Notes under the pieces: generated by a model | Seen by the model: the letters and a program-made list of their open reading frames with translations, nothing else | Database searches by the model: none | Told to the model about the DNA's origin: nothing | Program-made: the position numbers and the translations under genes | Shown here: positions 5,194-49,728 of the stretch, in pieces | How positions within the stretch are numbered: position 1 is the stretch's first letter | Layout of the letters: every line of letters begins with the position of its first letter | NCBI GenBank assembly: GCA_023213395.1 | Contig: CM041465.1 | Coordinates: forward strand, 200,701,741-200,765,740 | DNA length: 64,000 nucleotides | Direction: 5' to 3' | From: Cycas panzhihuaensis | Taxonomy: Eukaryota > Plantae > Cycadophyta

Positions 5194-5447
5194 TGTTATA
5201 GATCTTTTCTGTAACTAGAGCTCATTTTCCAGATTCCAAAGAGCACACATGAGCATAAGAGTAATTAAATAGATAAATAGTTAAAAAACATATATTTTAT
5301 TGATAAAAGATGAATGATGATGTATAATACATTGGAGGCCTCATTCATAGGTGCATAATAGGCCTATTGAATTAAAGGTCGCAACTCTTCAAAAGATGTC
5401 TTTTCATTTAATAAACTATTAATTAACCTTTAAGAAGGTTTATAACA
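5194..5447 (-). repeat. 3' LTR of the BRCT-carrying element
   Basis: TG...CA termini, adjacent PPT, roughly 80-85% identical by eye to 9008-9261. Confidence 0.92.
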
Positions 5448-6679
5448 ATTCCTCCCCCTTAAAGATGTTTTACCCATAAAACAAATTTGAATGATTAGTT
5501 GATCACTTCATTCAAGATGGTTCATAACAAAAGCTTCTTCTTAAAATGTTTTGTCTTTGAAACCTAATAATGATTAGCTTGAGGTCTTCTCTTACTGATA
5601 AAAGAATATCATAATTATCTGACATATGTCATCGAGTCATATTTGCTAGAACTTTAAATAATAATGAATACACATATAATAGTAAGCTTGATTAAGTTGA
5701 TGGGTTTGTGGGACAATTAGAATTCTTTGGTAGATGTTGATTACAAAATATTGAATTCTTGTATGCTTTTTCCTACGAGACAAAGATGGTTGCCATGGTA
5801 TCTTCCATTTGATTTTGACTTTAAGTTGTTGACATATGCAGTATTGTTTTGGAATGTATGATTTAATATTAATGCTTGAAAACTTCTTAAATTTATTAGG
5901 AAACAAAATGGTTTTTACTAACATTGGGAAATCCTTGGATACATATGATATAATTATTTGATTCATATTATTCGGTCAATTAAGAAGTGAGCTTGATATT
6001 GTCAGTATTAGAAATTTTTGTTTAGATTGATCAAGAAATATTATTAGTACTGGTTGATCCCTCTTCAACTGATTAAGAAATGTAGATGTCACTACTGACA
6101 TTAGCGACCATTTTGGTATATACTTTATATTTTTATAGATTGTTATATTTTCTTTTGGGAACAACACTAACATTTTATTTTTGTTAGTTACCAATGAGTT
6201 GTCTTTATTTTCTTGTTGTATATTATTTTCTTCTTCTTGCATACCCAAATCATATGTTGGGATTATGATTTGATTTATAGGCTCTTTTTCTTTCTATATT
6301 GTGTGATCTTGTATCCTAATATCTTTTAATATAGATGTGTCAACCTCATATGCATTGTTAACAAATTTATCCATAGGTCTTTTACGATTAAATGAATTCT
6401 CTTGATGCAACTTCTGTAATTTTTTTTACTTATTCTTTTAATTTCTTATCTATCGCCAATAAGTAATCATTATTGAGGTTTACTAATATTGGAGAAAATT
6501 ATTTATGTTTATCTCCACTTTTTAAATATGAAATCTTTTTATTTCTTCCCAATTTTCCATAAGTCCTTACTTCTGCTTGAAGAGGTTCATATAAACTAGT
6601 CGAATAGTTGTATGAGTTTTGATTGTATGTTGTTAATAGAGGTGGATAATCCTTTACTTCAAAATGTTCCACTTCTCAT

Positions 6680-7250
6680 CTACTTTTCAAGTAATTTTCT
6701 TTGGGAAGTATAGTCTTTAAGCCAATGATGATTTACTAACTTTATTCCTATTTTTTTAGCAGCCCTATACTTGTCGCCTTCATGCTTATAACAAATGAGG
6801 TGTGTTACTTCACTCGCAATCAACAACTTAATAAATCCTGCTCCTATTATTTCAATCATTCTCATAATGTCATAACGATCTTGCCCTTGATACCTAGTTA
6901 AGGAAATGCATAAAGATGCATTACTTAGAATACCCATCATATTTCTTACAAGTTTGTATAATATCTTATCAGTAGCCACAAGTATTCCATTAGCTAAACT
7001 ATCTTCAATCTATAAGTGTGTAACCAACACCTTCTCATCCTTCCTAGCCATAGCACAAATAGGATTATAATATGATAACTGGTAAACAATGACATGAGTA
7101 CAACTTGCATTATATCATCCTATGTTGAGAGCTCTATTGCACTCAAGTTCTATTTCATATTCATTACATGTTATAAGATCAAATCCTACTAGCAAAAATT
7201 AGGAGATGCTAGATTATATTATGTAGTATACCTTCAAATAATGGAGTGGT
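6680..7250 (-). pseudogene. Captured intronless fragment of a plant BRCT-domain protein (two N-terminal BRCT repeats; At4g02110-like)
   Basis: Translation LFEGI..FLLVGFD...SCTHVIV...YYNPICAMARKDEKVLVTHL*IEDSLANGILVATDKILYKLVRNMMGI...CISLTRYQGQDRYDIMRMIEIIGAGFIKLLIASEVTHLICYKHEGDKYRAAKKIGIKLVNHHWLKD resembles, from recall, the N-terminus of Arabidopsis At4g02110. It has stops and a small insertion near 7200-7226. Confidence 0.85.
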
Positions 7251-8154
7251 ACTCTTTGTAATGTTGTAACACCTTTGTATGATGTCGATGGCTAGTAAGT
7301 ATGTACCCTGAGAAGAATGTAGTGTTTTTAGTAGCATATGCCACAAGATTAATATAAGCAATGATAGTAGTGGAAAGTTTGAGGCACACTACTATGTAGT
7401 CATTCACTTGTGGTATCTGACAATTATTGTGGTATCTCGTGATTATGATGTATGATGTATGGTGTTTTAATGATCTTTTAGAGTAAATAAAGATTATTAT
7501 TATTCCTCTATTGTATGTATATAAAATATTTGATTTATTTAAGCAATAAATTGACAATCATAATTTGTTCAATCTTCATAAGATTATATAAGAGTGTTTA
7601 TAAATATATTTGTAATGTGACAAAATGGTTAGTAGCACCTCTATGTCATATTAATATATCCATGATAGAATAAATATATTTTATTTGGCATTGATTGTGA
7701 TATTATACTTTATGGAAAATGAATATTCAAGGTGACTCACTTTAAGGGTGACGTGAGTGATTTAGTGATGAATTCATGGATAGTATGTGGCAGTTGAAGT
7801 GACCTACAATAATACAGGCACAACTTGATGAGGGCAAACAAAATGGTAGTCTCCTTCAAATTGTTTCTGCTATGAATAATATAGTAATTAAGTAACAATA
7901 ACGTGACACACCCTCTGTGTCTACATCTGAGCTTATATGTATTGAGGTAGGCAATGAGGATATCTTTCTAATGTTGGTTGGCAAGTATGTACATGTTTTT
8001 GAAAACCCCAAATAATGATGTGTGTCTTCTTGTTGAACATGGAAATGTATATATTTTGAAGAATACAGGTTAGTTACGATTTCACAGCTTGTGAATATGC
8101 TGATTTATTTATCTAAATATACCACCATCTACCGATTTCTCTTACTAGAATATG

Positions 8155-8311
8155 AAGATTATAGAGTGTATATTTCAACCAAACTTGTTGATACATAAGA
8201 GTAGTGTGTGTGGATTTCAACCAAACACCAACAAAGATTATAGAGTGTGGATTTCAACCATACATGTCAATACAAAAGAGAAGGATGTGTGGATTTTGAC
8301 CAAACACCACC
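8155..8311 (+). repeat. Two ~79-bp tandem units, each a dimer of a GTGTGGATTTCAACCAAAC core
   Basis: Core at ~8166, 8208, 8245, 8287; AAGATTATAGAGTGT at 8155 and 8234. Confidence 0.75.
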
Positions 8312-9007
8312 AAGCGTTATAATCGCTTGATCTTTGGAAGTATATTAACGTTGATTTGACACAAGACAAGCATAGTTCATAAATATATAGTATAGATGGG
8401 TGATGTAGTATATGTGATACAGTTATGCTACCTGCATTCCTCATCAAAATCACACGAACACCATAGACATATGCTAGATCTCTTTTGAGTTAATGGGTAT
8501 GGTAGGCAATGATCTCTCAACATGTTATTAGCTAATCGATTGTGGAGATGATTTACTTATTGATAGTATATATTTGGTTGCTATTTATTATTTGTTTGAC
8601 TATGAAAGTGATGCTAAAGTTATGTGTTCATCAGAGCTTTCTATAGAGATTTTGGTGCATATTTACATCTGTAGGTGGTATGATATGATGAGGAGTTTCT
8701 ATATGAAAATAATGGTAGATTATGGCATATTAATCCCTATTGCAGATGTGATGAAACAATGTTGCATTAGCAAAATGTTCAAGTTTAGTAGCAACTAAAC
8801 ATCAATGCAACACTTATTTAGTAAGTATACATTAGATAAATAGGCCAACAAATGTATTTATTGAGAGATCTCCTTAGTTTACCTTTGATGTAAGTAGGAT
8901 TCAATAAGCACAAATGACAATAATGTTTTATTTTAATTATCAAAGAATAGACACTAATATTATATCCACTTCTTTTGAATGTGCCAAGATATTAGTCTCA
9001 TACCACT

Positions 9008-9261
9008 TGTTATAGACCTTTTCCATAACTAGAGCCTATTTGCCAGATTCCAGAGAGAACACTTAAGCACAAGAGTAATTGAATAGACAAATAGTCAAAA
9101 AACATATATTTGATTGATAAAAGATGAATGATAATGTACAATATATTGGAGGCCTTATTTATAGGTGCATAATAGGCCCCTTCAATAAAAGGTCATAACT
9201 CTTCAAAAGACACCTTTTAATTTAATAAACAATTAATTAAACTTTAAGAAGGTTTATAATA
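9008..9261 (-). repeat. 5' LTR of the BRCT-carrying element
   Basis: Adjacent to the PBS and followed by TSD GTAGA. Confidence 0.92.
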
Positions 9262-33612: not shown

Positions 33613-33683
33613 AGTGGTATCAGAGCCACTTTTTTTCTTATAGTAAGTTTGTGAAGGTTTTAGTGTCAGCTTTTCTACACCAA

Positions 33684-36600
33684 ATGGCAAAACTAGTAGG
33701 TATAAAGTTTGAGGTGGAGAAATTCAATGGCAAGAATAACTTCGAGTTGTGGAAGCTAAAAGCATATGATATTCTTGTATAGCAGGGTTCGTACAAAGCC
33801 CTTGCAGGTAAATCGAAGAAACCCATAGGGATGTACAATGATGAATGAGATGATTTAGACAAAAACACACTTAGCACAATACGATTGTGTTTGGTAGATG
33901 AAGTTTTGTTTAACATCGTAAGGGAGCAAACAACAGCAGGATTATGGAGCCGGTTAGAAGGCCTATATATGACCAAATCAGTAACAAATTGAATCTACCT
34001 AAAGACATAACTGTACTCATTATGGATGAAGGAAAGTACAAAAATTATTGACCATTTAAATATTTTTAATACTCTTATTTATCAATTAACTAGTATCGAT
34101 GTTAAAATTGAGGATGAGGACAAGGCTATTACCCTGTTATGCTCATTACTTGAATCCTAGGATAATATTGTCACCTCAATTAGTTTTAGCACTACAGATG
34201 AATTGGAATATGATTCTATTATGAGTGCTTTACTAATAGAGGAAGTGCAAAGTAAGTTTAGTCTTAAAACCTCCACACCAGAAGCCATGACAGTAAGGGG
34301 TAAAACATTTGAAAGAGGACAAAACTCCAGTGATACATTGAGGTCTAAGTCAAAGAGCAAAAAGAGTAAGCTCAGGTGTTGGCATTGTAATAAGACCGAT
34401 CACCTCAAGAAGGATTGTTACAAAAGGAAAGAGTTCTAGAAAAAGGAAGATCCTGCTAAGGAGATGAATCAAGTGGAGTCAAATCAAGGTATAGATGATG
34501 ATGTCTTGGTCACTTGTAATGTTTCTCATTATCACCATGACTGGTTATTAGATTCAGGTGCTTCATACCATATGTGTTCACACAAGAGTTGGTTTTTATC
34601 ATACCAACCTCTTGATGGTGATGTTGTGCTTATGGGAAACGAAGTTTCTTGTAAGACAGTGGGAATTGGTAGCATCAGAATTAAGATGTTCGATGGGGTA
34701 GTTAGAACATTAACTAAGGTTAGACATGTACCTAATTTAAAAAGAAATCAAATTTCCTTGGGTGAATTAAATTCAGGTGGTTTTAAGTATACAGGTCATG
34801 AAGGAGTCTTAAAGGTGTCAAAGGACACCTTGGTTGTTATGAAATCCTTAAAGAAAGGAAATCTTTACACTTTAGTGCGAAGTACAGATGTTAACCAAGT
34901 AGCTACATCGTTAAAGACTATAGAAGATCCTGCTCAACTATGGCATCAGAGACTTCAGCACATGAGTGAGAAAGGACTTAAGGTGCTGATAAACTGTAAG
35001 TTGCTTCCTAACTTGCAGATTTTAGACTTGGCTTTCTGTAAACATTGTGTTTTTGGAAAACAGTATAGACTCAGGTTTAAAGTAGGGAGTCACAGGATTA
35101 CATACATTCAGATGTATAGGGACCAACCCCTAAAATATCTTATAGAGGATCATTGTATTTTGTCACATTTATAGATGATTACTCCAAGAAGGTATGTGTA
35201 TATTTTTTGAAAAAGAAATCTGAAGCTTTTAGTGTGTTTAAGCAGTTCAAGGCTTTAGTTGAGAATAGTACTGGTAAGATAATCAAATGTTTAAGAACTG
35301 ATAATGGATGTGAGTTCAATTCCTTGGAGTTTGAGAACTATTGTAGAGAAGTTGGGATCGAAAGACACAAGACCGCTAGCTATACTTTGCAGCAAAATGA
35401 CATTGCTGAGCACATGAATAGGACACTCTTGGAAAGAGCAAGAAGCATGCTAAGTAATGCAGGAGTGGAGTAGGGCTTATGGGCATAAGCTGTTCAAACA
35501 GCTTACTATCTGGTAAATAGGTCACCATCACTTGTAATAGATTACAAAATTCATGAAGAGGTATGGACTAGACATCCATGTGATTATTCAAATTTAAAAG
35601 TTTTTTGTTATGATGCTTATGCCTGGACTGACAAAAGTAAATGTTCAAAGTTAGACCCAAAATCCAAGAGATATATCTTTGTTGGTTATGGTAATAAGGA
35701 TGGTGTGAAGAGATACAAGTTGTGGGATCCTACTGCCCACAAAATCACCATTAATAGAGATGTCATATTTGATGAATCTCTCCTTGTAAAATCGTATGAT
35801 GTAGAATTTGAAATGAAATAGGAGCAGCAAGATGAATATCAACAAGTCAAGTTTGAAATGCAGCCATTTGTGGAATTAGAAGAGCATGAAGATCTTTCTA
35901 AAGATGAATCAGCAGCAAATTCACAGGAGTATGTTGACACTCCTCTTCTAATAGTTAGAAGATCTACATGAGTTAGTCATCCACTTGACAGGTACATCCC
36001 TTTTATTTCTATTGCTTTAGTTTCTAATGATAGTGAGCCTGCATGTTATCAGGAAGTAGTAGATGATATCCATGGACAGAAGTGGATAAGGGCTGTGTAA
36101 AAAGAGATAGATGCCTTGAAGAAAAATAATTCATGGGACTTGGTAGAACTTCCACATGGCAGGAAGACTATTGGTTGCAAGTGGGTTTTTAAAAAGAAAA
36201 TAGATGTTGATGAAAATATTGATAAATACAGGGCAAGACTGGTGGCTAAAGGTTTTACACAGAAAGTAGGTATTGGCTTTCATGAGATCTTTTCACTAGT
36301 TGTTAAACTTGTTTCAATTTGAGTGTTGTTAGCATTAGTAGCTTCTCTTGATTTAGAGTTGGAGCAGTTAGATGTAAAAATAACTTTTCTACATGGAGAT
36401 TTAGATGAGGAGATCTATATGGATCAACCAGAAGGGTTTGTACAAGATGGTAGGAAAAAACTTGTTTGCAAGCTCAGGAAATCATTGTATGGTCTGAAGC
36501 AATCACCTAGGCAGTGGTACAAGAAGTTTGATGCCTTCATGGAGAGCCAAGTTTTCAAAAGAAGTGAGTATGATCATTGTGTTTACTTTAAATTTATAGA

Positions 36601-37594
36601 CAATGGCTTATTCATTATCTTGGTGTTATATGTTGATGACATGTTAGTTGTAAGCAAGAGCATGGAAGAAATCAATAAGCTAAAGGCTTAATTAGCTAGG
36701 ACTTTTGATATGAAGGATCTAGGAGCTGCAAAACAAATCTTAGGCATGGAGATACACAGAGACAGGAAAAATGGTAAGCTATGGTTATCATAGTAGAAAT
36801 ATATAGAGAAGGTGCTAACCAGGTTTGGTATGGCAAATATGAAACCAGTGAGTATCCCATTGGCTTCACACTTCAAGCTTTCTTCAAATATGAGTCCTAG
36901 TAGTGAAGAAGAAAAAGCTTATATGTCTTATATGCCTTATGCCAGTGCAGTAGGAACTTTGATGTATGCCATGGTATGTACAAGACCTGATATTTCACAT
37001 GTAGTCAGTGTAGTTAGCAAGTTTATGGCAAATCCAGGAAAGGAACATTGGGCTACAGTGAAATGGGTGCTTCGGTATTTGAGAGGCACGAGTGACTATT
37101 GCATCACCTTTAGAGGTATAGGTAATCAAGTTTGTGGATATGTCGATTTAGACTTTACAGGAGATTTAGACAAAAGAAGGTCTACTTCAAGTTATGTTTT
37201 TACTCTTACAAATGGTCTAGTTAGTTGGATGTCCAAATTGTAGAGCAGAATTACACTGTTAACCATGAAAGCTAAATATGTTGCTGCAGCACATGCTTGT
37301 AAAGAAGTAATCTAGTTACAGAGTCTATTAGTTGAGCTTGGAAGGAGACAGGAAAATATAAAGGTATTTTGTGATAGTCAAAGTGCCATTTACTTAGCCA
37401 AGAATCAAGCTTATCACAGTAGAACAAAGCACATTACTCTTAAATACCATTTTGTTAGACAGGTTGTGGAAGCAGGTGGAGTGGCACTTGAGAAGATTCA
37501 CACCAATCAGAATTATGCTAATATATTCATAAAACCAGTACTAGTAGAGAAGTTCAAATGGTGTTTGACTTCTCTTGGCTTGTAGGAAAGATGA
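33684..37594 (+). pseudogene. Copia D gag-pol pseudogene (gag, zinc knuckle, PR, INT, RT, RH)
   Basis: KFEVEKFNGKNNFELW; CWHCNKTDHLKKDC; WLLDSGAS; LRTDNGCEF; QLDVKITFLHG; LYVDDML. Scattered stops and a small frameshifting deletion near 35095. Confidence 0.95.
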
Positions 37595-40762: not shown

Positions 40763-41266
40763 GATTGATAGTTAATGAAGGGATAAACTCTTGATTCAAC
40801 TAATGGATCAACTTGGGAATATGAAGGTGTAGGGTATGAGTACCCACCTCCAACATATAGTAGGCAAGAGGTAGATCCATAGGGAGTATGCCCCTATTGA
40901 TAAGGGACATAAGTGGTATGGGAATATATGGTCCCCTTTAATTAGTAGGGAGGAGTAGCACTTGAATGGGGATATGATAGATAGGAAGGTGGGTGAGGTG
41001 GTCTCAACCCACCTCAAGGGTATGCCACATAAGCAAATGAGAGGTAAGGATATGCCCCTATAGGGGTAGATAAGTGATGAGGTGGAAGGTGTAAGGATGC
41101 AAGCCTCTCTTAATAAGAGCCCACATGAGCATAGAGTAGGATGCATGAGATGTGGGATGAGGAATAGGGCTTTTCCGATAGGGTCTACCAATGTGGGGGA
41201 TAACCCCATATGGGTGGAGAGGGCTTGCCCCATAGGTAGGAAGGGGGTTTAAGCCCCCATGCCCCT

Positions 41267-41708
41267 TGTGAGAATAGATATCATGCACAATGTCATAGGA
41301 TCAAGAAGACAGAAAATTACAAGTAAACAGACATTGCACACGTACACAGATTTTACCAAGTGGAAAACCCCTTATGGGGAAGAAAAAACACCTCCTAAGC
41401 TATGATTTTATTTATATCAGAAACTATACAAAGACCATAAAAATACCCTCTAAATACAACAAACTAGCCTTTGAAATAGGCTTTAGACAACCTTCTAGAT
41501 TCTTGAAACCATCTCCTTGAATCTAGGAGAGGGTATTAATAACAAGAAAGGTTCGTTGAAATGGGCAGTTACACATTTCAATGACCTTTCACATAATAAT
41601 AACATTAACTCTTAACTTTAAACCTTTGAATCACTTAAATATTTATTTATACATGTGACATAAATATAACATAACCATTAAATAAAACTAACATTAATAA
41701 TCCTAACA
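41267..41708 (-). repeat. 3' LTR of Copia E
   Basis: TGTGAGAATAG...TCCTAACA. Confidence 0.95.
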
Positions 41709-41757
41709 TCCCCCTTTACTGTTAGCTTTTATAATATAGAAAAAGAAGGTCTTCATC

Positions 41758-44700
41758 ACATTGATCCCCCTTTGATGGAGACTTCTTTTATCTTTAACAA
41801 ATCTCATAGGTTTAGAAACTTGACTTTAGTCAAAGACTTTGTGAGTATGTCAGTAACCTGTAGATCTATAAGACAATAAGATAAATAAATAATATTATTA
41901 ATAACAAGATTACAAATAAAATACTGATGTAATTCTATATGTTTAGTTCTTAAATGTGTAATCAGATTTGTAGTAATAGCAATGTCACATTGATTATCAA
42001 CTTTAAGTTCTCTGGAAGAGTTAAGAGTCAGACCAATTTTATTTAGAAGAGATTTGAGCTAAAGTACTTCTTTGTTGGATTCAATGAGTGCTCAATATTT
42101 AGCTGTAGTTGTTGATAGAGCTAGTGCCTATATTTTTTTACTAGACCAAGTAATTGGTGAAGAATCTAGAAAAAATACATAACCTGATGTAGGCTTACAA
42201 TCATTTATATCACCTGCACAATCTAAATCAGTATATCATATTAAAGTTAGAGGTTTACTACAAAAATTATAAGTTAGTCCATAAAAAACTGTGTTATGAA
42301 GATATTGTAATATACGTTTAGAAGCTTTCCAATGTGATTTATATGGCATTTACATATAACATGAACATAAAGTGACATCATAAGATATATTAGTGTGGGT
42401 ATGAGTTAAATAAATAAGACTACCAATTAGTTATCTATATAAGGCTGGATCACATAAAGGTGTGGAATAATTCGTATATAGTTTTACTCCTGATTGTAAC
42501 AGATTAGAGATAGGTTTAGCATTTTCCATGTTAAACCATTTAATTAAGTCTAAAATATATTTTGGCTAGGATATAGTTATTTTTAAATCATTTTGATAAA
42601 TTTGTAATTCAAGAAAATAATATAGAAGACTTAGATTGGTCATTTTAAATTTATTCATTAAAGTAGTTTTTAAGTGATGAATGATATTTGTTGATGATCT
42701 AGTGATGATGATATCATCAACATATAGGATTAAAATGGTAATATTTTTGTTTTCATATTTGAAATAAAGATTTAGATCAGTAATACATCTAGTGTATCTA
42801 ATTTAAATTAGATAATCATCAACTTTAGTATACCAAGCTTGAGGAGCTTGTTTTAGTCCATAAATAGATTTCTTTAGTTTACAAACTAAATTAGGATTAT
42901 CAATAAAGCTAGGTGGCTGAGACATGCAGATCTCTTCTTTGAGATCACCATTTAGAAATGTGCTTTTTACATCCATTTGATAGATTTCCCAACCAAAATC
43001 GGCTGTTAGAGTAATAATTATTTTAATCATTTTTATCTCTACAATAGGGGCAAAGGTTTCGTTATAATCTATGCCATCAATTTGAGAAAATCCTTTTGTG
43101 ACTAGACGAGCTTTATACTTTTCATCTAAGGTTGTTGAGTTATATTTAGTTCTATAAACCCATTTATAGTCAACTATATTTTTCCCTAGTGGGAGTGGTA
43201 CGAGATCCCACGTTGAATTTTTGATTAAAGTATCGAATTTAACTTGCATAGCTTCTTGCTATACAAGATTATTACTAGCTTGTTTAAAGGTTTTAGGATC
43301 ATTATTGTCCATTATTTTGGCTATTAAATCATAGTTAGCATGTAATTTTTGTGCATGTGTTCACCTAGTATCTGAAGGATTACCTACATCAGATCTAGTG
43401 TTAGCAATTGTTTTCTTTGCCTATATAGGCTATTTGTTGAGAACTAATTATGTAGTTACAGGTTAATTAAGGAGCTAACTTGAGAAGAAGAGTCTATTTT
43501 AGTAGGTTCAGATAGAGTCCAATTCTGGACTTTAGTAGATAAAGATTCTATAATTTCAGGATCAACTTGTTTGTCTGAGGGGTCAACCAAATAGGTGTTA
43601 GTTAACAGATTTTCAACCGAAAGTTCTACATAAGTAGAGGTTGAAGAAGATCCTTCTTCATCAAATATAACATTAAGCAAAATTAAAATTTGATGCATAA
43701 CTAGATCCAAAAGTCTATAGGCTTTAATTTCTTCACTGTATCCAACAAAGATGTATTTTGGACTCTAAGAATCAAGTTTCTTGCGTTTTTCTTTGGGAAC
43801 GTGTCCCTACACAATACTTCCAAAGATTCATAAATGATTGACTAAGGGTTTTATTCCAGATCACTTTTGTTATAGAGTAATATTTTGTAAGCATTTACTA
43901 GGTAAACGATTTAGAAGATAGTTGGAGTAGTTAATTGCTTCTGCCCACAACTTTAAATTAAGATTCTTTGCATGTAACATGCAATGAGTCATCGCAACAA
44001 GAGTGCAGTTCTTGCATTTAGAAATACTATTTTGCTGAGGAGTGTATGCAACAGAATGTTGAAATTGAATTCCATCCTTTTTATAGAAGGGAGTGAATTT
44101 TCCACTTAAGTATTCTTTGGCATTATTAGATCTGAAAATTTTAATTTTTAAGTTTGATTAGTTTTTAACAAGTGTTTCAAATTCTATGAAAATATCAAAT
44201 ACTTGACTATGTGTTTTGAGTGTGTATACCCAACATTTTCTAGAAAAATCATCAATAAATGTAACAAAATAATGAGAGCCAAAGTATGATACTATATGAA
44301 ATGCTCTACATATATCAGATGGAACAAGTTCAAGTAGAACTTTCGCTCTGAATTGACTTTTATGTCGAAAAGGGTCCATGTGTTACTTACCTGTTACACA
44401 GGCTTCATAGACACCATAAAGAGTATTTAAAGGTGGAAGACCATGAACCATGTCATGTCTTTTTAGGTATTAGAGTTTGCCATAACTAGTATGTCCAATG
44501 ATACATGCTAAAGTTTACTGACTCAGTCAGATTTGGCTATGAAGGCACTGAAGGGTTTTGTTTTATTATTTTGTAAACTTATTAAACTATATAGATCTAT
44601 ACTATGATCAACATGTCCTAAGGTAATACATTTAAATTTATTTAATGGTTCTTTAATAATAAATTTATCTTTCTAGAATTCAACAACAAGGTCTTTCTGG

Positions 44701-45974
44701 CAGATTTGGTAAATAGAGAGTGGGTTTGGTAATAAACTAGGTACGTAGAAGATGTCCTTTATTAAACCATCTTTTAAGGTAACATCACTTGATCCTTTTA
44801 CTTTAAGTTAGGTTCAACTTCCAAAATAAATCTTTTCTTTAGAGTTAGTTTTAGATTGATAAGTGGATAAGTTTTTCTGGTGTCCTGTCATGTGATGGGA
44901 TGCACTAGAGTCAAGGATCCATTATGGTGGTTGATTAGTTAGGGCAACAAATATAGAAGTTATTGCCATTAAAGAATGATTATGAGTTTGTTGTCAGTTT
45001 TGTGGTCGAGATTGAGGTCAGTTTTGTAATCTCTTAGAAGCTTTCCATGCTTCCGAAGCTATTATACTTCTACAGACATCAATAGTATGGCCTCTAGTAT
45101 GATAATAGGCACAACTAGTGTTTTAAGAAGGATTTACATTATTCTAATTAGGAAAGGACTGATTAGAAGCATTCTAATATTTAGATGGACTAAAATACTT
45201 AATGTTATTTTGGGAGTTAGGTGGTGAGCCTCTATGAGGTTTATGAAATTTTAGATTACTATTAAAGTTGTTTTGATGTTTGTTTTTATTTTTTAGATTA
45301 GTTTTAAAAAATAAATCCTAGGAAGGATCTTTTAATATGCCTATCTGAATTAATATTATTTGATGTTCTATTAGTTAGTTTATCAACTGATTAAATGTTA
45401 TAGGAGGATTTCCAGTTTGTTGTCTAGTTGTTTTAAAAAAATTAAAATGTTTTGGTAATTTGTTTATTGTAAGATGAATGAGCATATCGTCATCTTTAGC
45501 ATGAGTGATTATTTATTCGGTATCACCTACTTTAGTTTTAGATTTAATATAGTTACCTAAGTCTTTATTAATTAGTTAAATTTTGCATAAAAAATCCTCA
45601 ACGTTAGAAAAATCATCATAATTAAGGTCATACAATTGTTGTTCTAAGATAACTAGTTGATGTGTATCGACCTTATCATATTTTTCTTACAGAGTGTTCG
45701 AGACAGTGGCTAGATCATCTATTACAAAAAACTGTCGACTGATTTCTAGTGAAAGTGAGTTCAAGATGGTACCTAGTGTTGAATCTAAGTTCATCAAATA
45801 TACCATATAGATTTCTGAAGTTGCATCGGTTGGTTTTTAAAATTCACCTGTCACATATCCCCATATCTTTTGCTGTTTAAGCTGATGGGATATACGATTC
45901 CTCCAGTCAGCATAGTTTGGGCTAGTTAAAACTAGAATTAGAACGCATGTGATTTTCCCTAGCATGAAAGCCAT
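41758..45974 (-). pseudogene. Copia E gag-pol pseudogene
   Basis: RT (YKARLVTKGFSQIDGIDY, QMDVKSTFLNG, 42803-43249), INT (YFVTFIDDFSRKCW, 44158-44379), PR (WILDSSASHHM, ~44890-44920), gag ATG ~45974; many stops. Confidence 0.92.
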
Positions 45975-46828
45975 ATTGGGAATTATATGATTTAATTAGA
46001 GATTGGTGGATATAAGTGTAGGTGAAAAAATAATCACTTAGTAAAGTTACCAAACATCAAATTAACATTTCAAAGGCATAATTAAAAACTAAAAATCATA
46101 GTAGGATGAATGAATACCTTTCCCTTTAAAAAAGAATTACACATTCCCCTTTTTCTTAAAAAGTAAATAGTCCCCCTTAACAAAGTAAGTGTTTACTTTA
46201 TAATTTGAGTGTTATGATTCTATTTTTATAAAAGATTATTGTTTTACTATTGTTAATTAGCAAATAATAATAATGCAGGAAAAAATATATTAATTTAAAA
46301 GAAAATTTTATTGTTAATTCTAGTGTTGAAAGATATTTAATTTCTAAATATTTAATGAAGTTTATAAAAAGTTTTTATTGATTAAAAAAGAGAATTTTAA
46401 TTAGAAAAAATATTAATATATTAAAGTAGTATTATGTTATAGGGGGGAACACTGTAGTGAAGGTTATAAAATAAATATAATAAAAATGGTTAATATCCTA
46501 ATCAATATGAGTATTGTATATAATAGTTGATTTATTTAACTGCTTAAAGATGAAAATAATTTTGAAGAAAATTTAGCCTAAAGCTAATTTGGCTTAATTT
46601 GCAAGGTATATTATATATAAGGAGTTTAATTTTAACAATAATGATGTAATTAAGTGAAGGTGTATTAATTAAAAATAATGAAGGTAGAGGATTAATTTTA
46701 AAAGTGTAAGAGACTTTTGTTTATATATCAATTATAATGGAAGGAATTAAATAATTAAGTGTGGGGGGGAGGGGAAATTTAACAAGAATGAAGTAGTTAA
46801 TTATAAAGAGGAAAGTATTAAAATCTAA

Positions 46829-46988
<160 letters not shown>

Positions 46989-47482
46989 TCAATAAAGAAA
47001 ACATAGGCAGACCCGATGAGTTTGTTTAATTGATAAAAGTAAATAAAATTTAAAAACCAATTGGGGTCCAAGGTGGGGTAAGGGTGAAACTCTACCTACC
47101 TGGTCATTCTCTCCATGGCGATGCTTTGTTTCTAAGCTTCAACTGGTTGCAGGCTACGAAGGTTCTCTGGCATAATCGTTGGCATCTCTAAACGGCTTCT
47201 CTGAATTGTTCTTAGGTCAGAAATTTGCCTCTAGCGTACACAACAAACTCTATCATGGTCCACAATGAGAAGCCTATTGCAGTGAAGGTCATTGCACTAC
47301 CCAAAGGTTCCTAGATACTCTCGCAACATTCCCACACTGGTGTGCCCTAGTGGAGAAGACGGTCTCATTATCAGCACTCGTGATCTAAATCACGTGGTCG
47401 TCATTGATAAGTGGAGCATGAAGAAGACCGTCGAGGGTGGGTTACCTTTAAAGATGCAATTGATGTGGTTGTTGTTTCAGGT

Positions 47483-48314
47483 CTTGCCCGTGTAATTCCA
47501 ACCCTAGATCCTAACAATCTTGATCTTTTTACTAACACCATGGACAAGTATGAGAAATTGTAGAAGGTTAGGTAAGGCACCTATGAAAAGGTGTACAAAG
47601 CCAAACACAAAGTAATGGGATAGCTTGTTGCTCTCAAGAAAACTAGACTTGAGATGGACAAAGAGGGAGTTCCTTCCACTGCACTTCGTAAAGCTTCTCT
47701 ACTGCAAATTCTCTCCCAAAGTATTTATGTTGTTTGGTTGCTTTGTGTAGAGCATGTAGACAAGAAAGGGAAACCCTTACTTTATTTGATTTTTGAGTAC
47801 TTAGACACAGATCTAAAGAAGTTCAATGACTCTCATCAGTGTGGAAGCAAAATGAGTCCCCTTCTACCTAAAATTATTCAGAGTTTTATGTACCAATTGC
47901 TTAAGGGGGTTGCTCACTGTCATAGCCATGGGGTGATGCATAAGGATTTAAAGCCACAAAATCTATTAGTGGACAAAGATAAAGGCTTTCTTAAGATTGC
48001 AATTCCAGGCTTGGGAAGAGCTTTTATTGTGCCTATCAAGAGTTATGCCTACAAGATTGTGACCCTTTGGTACATGGCTCCAGAGGTGTTGTTAGGTTCC
48101 ACTCATTATTTAACCCTTGTTGATATTTGGTCTGTTGGGTGCATCTTTGCTGAAATAGAGAGAAGATGATCACTTTTCCTTGGAGATTCTAAACTACAGC
48201 AATTGCTTCAGATCTTTAGGTTGCTTGGAACTTTGAATAAAGAGTTGTGGCCTGGAGTAAATTATTTAAGGGACTGGCATGAGTATCATCAGTGGAAGCC
48301 TTAGAACCTTGCTC
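47483..48314 (+). pseudogene. CDKB: Intronless, circularly permuted retrocopy of a B-type cyclin-dependent kinase
   Basis: ATG 47540: MDKYEKL*KVR*GTYEKVYKAK...LVALKKTRLEMDKEGVPSTALRK..LLQILSQSIYVV.LLCVEHVDKKGKPLLYLIFEYLDTDLKKF...HKDLKPQNLLVDKDKG...WPGVNYLRDWHEYHQWKP*NLA. Single frame, no introns. The downstream CDKB-like residues LARVIPTLDPNNLDLFT lie at 47483-47533, before the ATG. Confidence 0.93.
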
Positions 48315-48322
48315 TGATACCA
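48305..48322 (-). promoter_or_regulatory. tRNA-iMet primer-binding site of Copia E, overlapping the last CDKB codons
   Basis: Plus strand AACCTTGCTCTGATACCA versus the plant tRNA-iMet 3' end AACCTGGCTCTGATACCA (17/18). Confidence 0.93.
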
Positions 48323-48772
48323 TGTGAGAATAGGTATCATGCACAATGTCACAGGATCAAGAAGACAGAAAATTACAAGTAAACAGACATTGCACACGTA
48401 CACAAATTTTGCTAGGTGGAAAACCCCTTCTGGGGAAGAAAAACCACCTCCTAAGCTATGATTTTATTTATATCAGAAACTATACAAAGACCATAAAAAT
48501 ACCCTCTAAATATAATGAACTAGCCTTTGAAATAGGCTTTGGACAACCTCCTAAATTCTCGAAACCACCTCCTTGAATCTAAGAGAGGGTATTAATAATA
48601 AGAAAGGTTCGTTGAAATGGGCAGTTACACATTTCAACGACCTTTCACATAATAATTAAATAATAACATTAACTCTTAACTTGAAACCTTTGAATCACTT
48701 AAATGTTTATTTATACATATGACATAAATATAACATAACAATTAAATAAAACTAACATTAATAATCCTAACA
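48323..48772 (-). repeat. 5' LTR of Copia E
   Basis: Directly abuts the PBS; TG...CA termini. Confidence 0.95.
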
Positions 48773-49728
48773 CCCTTAAGGTTGTGATATGTGCCTTAGG
48801 GGGACATAAAGTAAAATGTCCACATAATGTGAACATGGATGAGTAGAAACTAAACTTCCTTAACCTAGATAATATAAACGCGGAGGAATATTAGATGGAA
48901 GTGGAGGGATGTGGGTAGTAGTGGGTTATGGAATGGTTATTTACAATGAAGGCCAATTTTCCCCTATTTGAGGGGCTTGTGTACCTTGAAATTCCACTTT
49001 ATTTAGCAAGGCACTTATATGGATAGGTGTTGTAGAGATAGCCTCCTGAAGGGAGAAAAAGATAGGTTGAAGGGATGAAGGAGAAGGGGTAGTAGAAGGA
49101 GTAAGTGTCAAGCTTTATAGAAAGTGCTGCAACCACTTATAATGTGGTTGTAGCTTCAAAGCACTCCTCTATAACATCCACCATGTCCCCGTGTGAAGTA
49201 TAAGCTTGGTCGTAGGAGGTAGAAGGTTCTCCTTATCAACCAGAATATTAAGAGAAGCTAATAGGATCTTTCTTAGAATACTAAGTAGAGTCTACAGATT
49301 GAGATCCTCCTATGACATGCATAGGAGGGGCTTAAGGGTCTGAATAAACCTCTAGTTATTTAGTCAAGTAATAAAATAGGTCCCCAACAACTTGGGAGGG
49401 GTCTTAATGTGGATAAGAGGCCTTAAGATGAGGCCAATTAGGGGCATAGAAATCATATACCCAATCCAATGGATGTCTCTTCATCAATGACTCTTGGTTA
49501 AATGAAGCAATGGGAGAATAGGAGGGTTCTACTTCCAATGGAGGCAAACCAGGCAACTGACAGGAGAAGCATCACATTCATAGAATAACTAATCTATTTA
49601 AGGAAGTATTAAATAAAAAAGGCATATTATGTGGTGGATAATACTTAGTACCTTAATAAAACCCTACACACAAGGGGGAGGAGGTGTGCAAGATGGCCAA
49701 ATAGGGCCTAAGGCTTTCCTACTAGTGA

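Follow-up and report, generated by a model that had tools for sequence, protein, structure and literature searches.

The 5′ leader of a Copia element in the Cycas panzhihuaensis window (the whole 64,000-nucleotide stretch of DNA that was analysed) carries antisense, apparently spliced fragments of two host mRNAs, one for a B1-type cyclin-dependent kinase (CDKB1) and one similar to L-gulonolactone oxidase (GulLO). Probably, these fragments came in during one aberrant reverse transcription, in which strong-stop DNA primed on host mRNA and then hopped between templates, with the resulting chimera spreading afterwards by retrotransposition. Such a capture of two genes, antisense and anchored at the primer-binding site (PBS), is a better-supported finding than the fossil circular RNA (circRNA) by which a preliminary description of this DNA had accounted for the CDKB part.

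Architecture of the cargo-bearing Copia element

The element lies on the minus strand between two long terminal repeats (LTRs), which were located by alignment to each other: the 5′ LTR at 48323-48772, and the 3′ LTR at 41267-41708. The two repeats have TG...CA ends and are 94.6% identical (K2P 0.057), and they are bordered by a 5-bp target-site duplication with four of its five letters equal (CCCCT at 41262-41266 and CCCTT at 48773-48777). Adjoining the 5′ LTR, an exact pattern match identified the minus-strand PBS TGGTATCAGAGC for the initiator methionine tRNA (tRNA-iMet) at 48311-48322, and, adjoining the 3′ LTR, the minus-strand polypurine tract AAAGGGGGA could be read off the sequence at 41709-41717. 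Here, the ORF list and Pfam matches together outline a decayed gag-pol in the Copia order at 42803-45974 (minus strand), which includes a Retrotran_gag_3 domain at 45837-45974 (Pfam 4e-4), the rve domain of the integrase at 44158-44379 (Pfam 1e-4), and the RVT_2 domain of the reverse transcriptase (RT) at 42803-43249 (Pfam 4e-47), all three of them on the minus strand and interrupted by stop codons. The Copia setting given in the preliminary description is thus borne out, with the LTRs, the PBS, and the gag, integrase, and RT order all present, and the cargo-bearing element belongs, in degenerate form, to a Copia family with many copies. Separately, for a 40-nt part of the LTR (48407-48447) we observed a summed contig depth of more than 100,000 in three DNA runs, or tens of times that for the rest of the LTR, which means that this part is common to a far more abundant repeat.

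Measured from the PBS to gag, the leader of the cargo-bearing element is about 2.3 kb long, as against about 60 nt in a second Copia element of the window (33615-36691, plus strand). This second element has an exact iMet PBS at 33615 and long ORFs for protease, integrase, and RT, and is far better preserved than the cargo-bearing one. Between the captured pieces and gag, there is an AT-rich stretch (45975-47306) that includes a (TA)n tract at 46825-46990 and gave no Pfam or HMM protein match. Insert-free relatives of the cargo-bearing Copia were not found within the window, where the native leader and the point of return to the element were not located either, and ARAGORN reported zero tRNA genes for the window. 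In the sequencing runs, a 928-nt contig (run X24, record 19) follows the LTR and PBS (48311-48445) and then passes into a different leader, from which we conclude that a related cargo-free element exists and may be transcribed.

The window also contains an LTR pair at 5194-9259 that carries a BRCT-like ORF, has LTRs that are 87% identical, and, immediately to the left of 9008, shows the minus-strand sequence TGGTATGAGAC, which resembles a PBS. As a second example of antisense capture this element was rejected, with its BRCT-like ORF (6680-6979) lying on the same strand, and so being sense cargo, at about 2 kb from the PBS.

Captured fragments and their joints

With the element on the minus strand, the CDKB cargo, which reads along the plus strand, is antisense to it. 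The main piece (47538-48312, plus strand) is an intronless pseudogene of a CDKB1-type kinase that spans residues 1-258 and at least 2 nt of 5′ UTR, and its coding match (47540-48313) aligns free of gaps with residues 1-258/260 of plant CDKB1 proteins. The top matches of its stop-free 181-aa piece (E 1e-88, 77-79% identity) are named CDKB1 and come from many land plants. Moreover, the main piece is identical to the Cryptomeria protein P0020 at 194 of 258 residues, gives a Pkinase match in Pfam (4e-31), and in the B-type region reads VPSTALRK, with VPPTALRE being the CDKB1 counterpart. It has five in-frame stops (47561, 47573, 47621, 48167, and 48302) and zero frameshifts, as counted in the window copy itself. 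At three of the five stop codons (47561, 47621-47623, and 48168), the window differs from most other copies in the sequencing runs, at 48168 too; the stops at 47561 and 47621-47623 seem to be peculiar to the window copy.

The CDKB copy stays colinear across the conserved introns after CIF-G (48149|48150), HIF-AG (48219|48220), and DLL(S/T), the first two of these positions being placed by many read-through gene models in the match list and not by the host's own gene. Judged by this colinearity over 258 residues, the CDKB cargo is apparently a spliced copy, in line with the intronless CDKB that had been claimed for it, and the earlier translation of 47483-48316 was reproduced as written. The host's own CDKB1 protein (DLLTNML) was absent from the 120 matches listed. 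When metagenomes were searched with a moss CDKB query, the results consisted solely of cDNA-like contigs and of algal genes that have one intron or none, with zero land-plant gene structures. We also noticed a 1112-nt contig (run X24, record 18) that has 35 nt in common with the window (48267-48301) and is thereafter unlike it (...EDVWPGVTK..., QDLSRAVPEL), this being a paralogous host CDK transcript.

Upstream of the start codon, protein alignment and run contigs revealed a second CDKB1 piece (47483-47537, plus strand), made up of residues 256-273 and the letters AACA. Its 17 codons (47483-47533) overlap the main piece by two (LA), CTTGC is found at both ends of the insert, and both ends correspond to one CDS position. 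The permuted order in the preliminary description is upheld by this alignment and by a contig from each of the runs X1, X3, and X24, in which 48307 leads directly to 47483 (a step back of 825, with 5 letters in common). In the host's linear CDS, the two positions are therefore adjacent, and the permutation is real. The X24 contig has a loose end after DLLT that reads ...CTTCTTACC AAC ATG CTG, and the window continues after ACT with AAC ACC ATG. AACA (47534-47537) is hence also how the host's next exon begins, and since the window and this exon have it in common, the CDKB/CDKB joint can be anywhere from 47533 to 47537. As an ambiguous microhomology, 47534-47537 may belong equally to the host's next exon or to the 5′ UTR. 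On the donor side, an exon end after DLLT is suggested by the read-through models P0009 (lycophyte) and P0029, both of which diverge at this point with a V (GTN) codon, and the joint sits 0-4 nt past this putative exon end, given that AACA also matches the next exon.

At the opposite end, the similarity to CDKB stops inside the PBS (48311-48322), which agrees with the end at the PBS that had been described before. The 3′ end of plant tRNA-iMet is AACCUGGCUCUGAUACCA (PMC7198128). Compared with the 18-nt 3′ end of this tRNA, positions 48305-48322 are the same at 17 of 18 letters, and 48305-48314 are common to the CDKB piece and the tRNA-like 10-mer. More specifically, the host CDS at the entry point, AACCTTGCCC, is equal to the first ten tRNA bases of AACCUGGCUCUGAUACCA at eight positions, among them all five that would pair with the 3′ end of the primer's tRNA copy. 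A tRNA match of this kind has a chance of 4e-4 per site, and just two such sites occur in the 825-nt insert. The onset of the similarity is exactly the 18th tRNA base, and the joint is thus in register with the tRNA. In retroviruses, it is at this point that m1A58 halts plus-strand strong-stop synthesis. Position 48310 has the CDKB-type T and not the tRNA-type G.

On the left, the CDKB cargo is joined to a GulLO-like (FAD_binding_4) fragment (47307-47488, plus strand), which likewise runs antisense to the element and is interrupted near 47436 by a 1-nt frameshift. Within it, 47307-47453 resembles plant L-gulonolactone oxidases in their FAD-binding domain (Pfam E 0.014; a score of 0.90 for ESM Atlas features). 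The fragment's best phmmer E is 7.8e-10 with 59% identity, an HMM built for this analysis gave an E of 5.5e-19, and its matches are plant GulLO-named proteins that have ALO and GULLO2-like domains. It extends over about 60 residues only, with the ALO part being absent, and past the 1-nt frameshift the spacing of the match is unchanged up to a conserved GLA. This GLA and the NLA of CDKB have CTTGCC (47483-47488) and the following C in common. By these similarities, the region left of 47483 is a second captured host gene and not the leader of the element. A second GulLO piece further downstream (47074-47094, WGKG) was rejected as not significant by HMM. Also rejected was a left CDKB joint that re-enters the element via the same PBS microhomology, the left partner being the GulLO fragment.

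Each of the joints is spanned by contigs from the sequencing runs, namely GulLO/CDKB (X3 records 25 and 26), CDKB/CDKB (X1 record 1 and X3 record 26), and CDKB/PBS/LTR (X1 records 7 and 8, X2 record 14, and X3 record 32). These joint-spanning contigs are 84-96% identical to the window, originate from three DNA runs with two species labels, and amount to about 5-11 distinct contigs per position. That diverged copies under two species labels share the joints indicates that the chimera formed once and was then retrotransposed many times. In the run search, no run contained more than 0.27 of the sampled words and no run with matching words is recorded as RNA, and X24, as the one possible RNA run, has only the linear CDKB order. 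DNA contigs with the linear order likewise exist in the runs (48082 to 48307 and then 47483), and being intronless across the intron positions, they represent processed copies and not the parent gene.

Origin of the antisense and permuted cargo

All three cargo pieces are on the plus strand, a polarity that fits a single DNA 3′ end which was extended on sense RNA templates in the direction leading away from the PBS. The plus strand of the element is the only one that can take up antisense cDNA made from an mRNA, and strong-stop DNA is the sole primer of this strand with a tRNA copy at its end, for which reason we propose strong-stop priming. Thus, plus-strand strong-stop DNA that ends in the 18-nt copy of tRNA-iMet (...GAGCCAGGTT-3′) would anneal to the tRNA-like 10-mer AACCUUGCCC of the CDKB1 mRNA, instead of pairing solely with the minus-strand PBS. 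RT would then extend this primer toward the 5′ end of the mRNA and produce an antisense copy from residue 258 back to residue 1. A few bases upstream of the ATG, the growing strand would change templates, probably via AACA, and continue on a CDKB1 mRNA (the same one or another) whose 3′ remainder had not yet been copied, landing 55 nt downstream of the entry point and copying back to the end that RNase H would have made at the entry. Forced off this CDKB end, it could re-anneal via CTTGCC(C) on the GulLO-like mRNA, copy this too, and further on return to the minus-strand DNA of the element. The plus strand would have kept its PBS, with which the PBS end of the minus strand could presumably still pair, such that both LTR ends become double-stranded, and replication would fix the loop. 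The insert would be without a function of its own, as cargo under no selection.

There is microsimilarity at all of the fusion points, which for the tRNA copy and CDKB comprises 8 of 10 bases, for CDKB and GulLO the letters CTTGCC(C), and for CDKB and CDKB the letters AACA, these last being seen from one side only. A point against the strong-stop model is the T at 48310, as this needs either a later change or a choice made in repair. Moreover, an internal joint that falls within 0-4 nt of a conserved exon end is a coincidence in this model, with a chance of roughly 1-3%. In full-text searches of the literature, there was no description of a plant element whose plus-strand strong-stop DNA had primed synthesis on a cellular mRNA.

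Alternatively, the capture and the permutation could be separate in time, with an ancestor holding a linear antisense CDKB insert that was permuted later, through a template switch between two packaged genomes (a partial tandem duplication) and then a strong-stop mis-transfer to an internal tRNA-like site, by which the outer part was deleted. For this, linear intronless copies of CDKB are indeed found as DNA in the same runs, and the internal AACCTTGCCC site is a plausible target for mis-transfer. However, at least two extra events are required, and it would be unexplained why the end of a duplicated piece should coincide precisely with the exon-end/AACA position. Moreover, the linear copies may lie outside the cargo-bearing Copia family, and all family contigs seen at the joints have the permuted form. 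We regard a later permutation as unlikely.

Another possibility concerns the template, which in the preliminary description was a circRNA: a back-splice would have linked the DLLT exon end with an acceptor 6 nt ahead of the ATG, and the resulting circle of spliced exons would have been copied once around to the entry, with the entry from the PBS being the same. Much of what this interpretation was built on holds, as the CDKB copy is intronless and permuted, is located in a Copia element, ends at the PBS, and has the donor side of its internal joint at a putative exon end, but a circle is neither required by these features nor the best reading of them, and we consider it quite improbable. The exon end on the donor side is conserved from a lycophyte (P0009) to a second plant lineage (P0029), the joint is ancestral to the family (being spanned in X1 record 1 and X3 record 26), and circRNA-derived pseudogenes have a precedent in mammals (PMC4897178). 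A single lap also accounts for why entry and exit are one CDS position, though this would follow equally well if synthesis ran off a linear mRNA remnant at the end made by RNase H. That AACA is the start of the next exon is predicted by a microhomology switch on spliced linear mRNA, whereas with a back-splice it is a coincidence, whose chance is roughly 0.4-3% if one allows for how often plant CDKB start codons are preceded by A and C (such bases were common ahead of the ATG in the cDNAs from the moss-CDKB metagenome scan). A circle also requires a 5′ UTR intron that has its acceptor exactly at -6, and at the neighbouring joints of the same event the switching is by ordinary microhomology. Taken alone, the joint data are close to neutral between a circle and a linear template. 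In cells, circRNAs are much rarer than mRNA, and it is this rarity, along with the extra demand on gene structure and the microhomology switches next door, that favours the linear template. Consequently, the reading preferred here is the one that the preliminary description put forward as its alternative, in which RT jumped on a linear mRNA template to its 3′ part. If there was indeed a circle, the CDKB copy would be without a known precedent as a circRNA-derived retrocopy, both in plants and within LTR elements.

Lastly, it is rather improbable that ready-made host cDNA fragments were joined into the leader of an integrated or extrachromosomal copy by non-homologous (NHEJ) or alternative end joining (alt-EJ), with the position at the PBS being accidental or due to a break there: microhomology joints are also a mark of alt-EJ, and alt-EJ factors take part in second-strand transfer via PBS microhomology according to a review (PMC12786077), but the 18-nt tRNA copy and the joint are in register and overlap from the last base of this copy onward, all three pieces have one polarity, and the PBS stayed usable, as follows from the chimera having gone on multiplying.

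Comparison with known systems

By the usual account, LTR retrotransposons capture genes through switches in first-strand synthesis, with sense cargo as the outcome. The locus described here provides base-level evidence for another route, in which strong-stop DNA appears to prime on a tRNA-like mRNA and thereby leaves antisense cargo behind the PBS. Should this be recurrent, it would be a predictable mode of capture, which could be searched for by its antisense spliced cargo and by a joint that keeps the register of the tRNA 18-mer. Host genes, here that of a cell-cycle kinase, would then be present as long antisense stretches in the transcripts of such elements, and these transcripts could feed small-RNA pathways. 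Moreover, the locus illustrates how the order of a retrocopy can become permuted with no circular RNA involved, which calls for caution in screens for circRNA-derived pseudogenes.

LTR-mediated retroposition is known to involve switches at microsimilarity, chimeras of several genes, and further transposition (Tan et al., 2016, PMC5131818, with Ty1 in yeast and Bs1 in maize cited there). Like the cases in that study, the element in the window has intronless copies of host mRNA from several genes, both LTRs kept, microsimilarity at the joints, and the ability of a pseudo-element to be transposed further. The model proposed there, however, relies on switching between RNA templates during first-strand synthesis and gives sense cargo that replaces internal ORFs, whereas in the window the cargo is antisense and PBS-anchored, the joint is in the tRNA register, and gag-pol has not been replaced. 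Antisense, PBS-anchored capture is absent from PMC5131818 and from a 2026 review of plant gene capture. Antisense cargo that begins at the PBS in the tRNA register points to plus-strand strong-stop DNA as the wandering primer.

In normal plus-strand strong-stop transfer, the primer likewise consists of the LTR and an 18-nt tRNA copy that ends before m1A58, and its 3′ end seeks a complementary PBS. What differs in the window is the putative acceptor, a cellular mRNA that resembles the tRNA end at 8 of 10 bases, in place of the element's minus-strand DNA. With the circRNA-derived pseudogenes (Dong et al., 2016, PMC4897178), the cargo has in common a permuted order of exons and a joint with one side at an exon end. 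What sets the cargo apart is that the next exon begins with the same four bases that follow the exon end here, that an LTR element surrounds the copy, with a microhomology joint on either side, and that the acceptor and the circle are hypothetical. Finally, the head-to-tail fusion of different transcripts by successive jumps of one RT is also seen in the multipartite chimeric retrogenes of LINEs (PMC2104539), although these, unlike the cargo in the window, are the product of a non-LTR enzyme and target-primed synthesis, with no PBS or LTR context.
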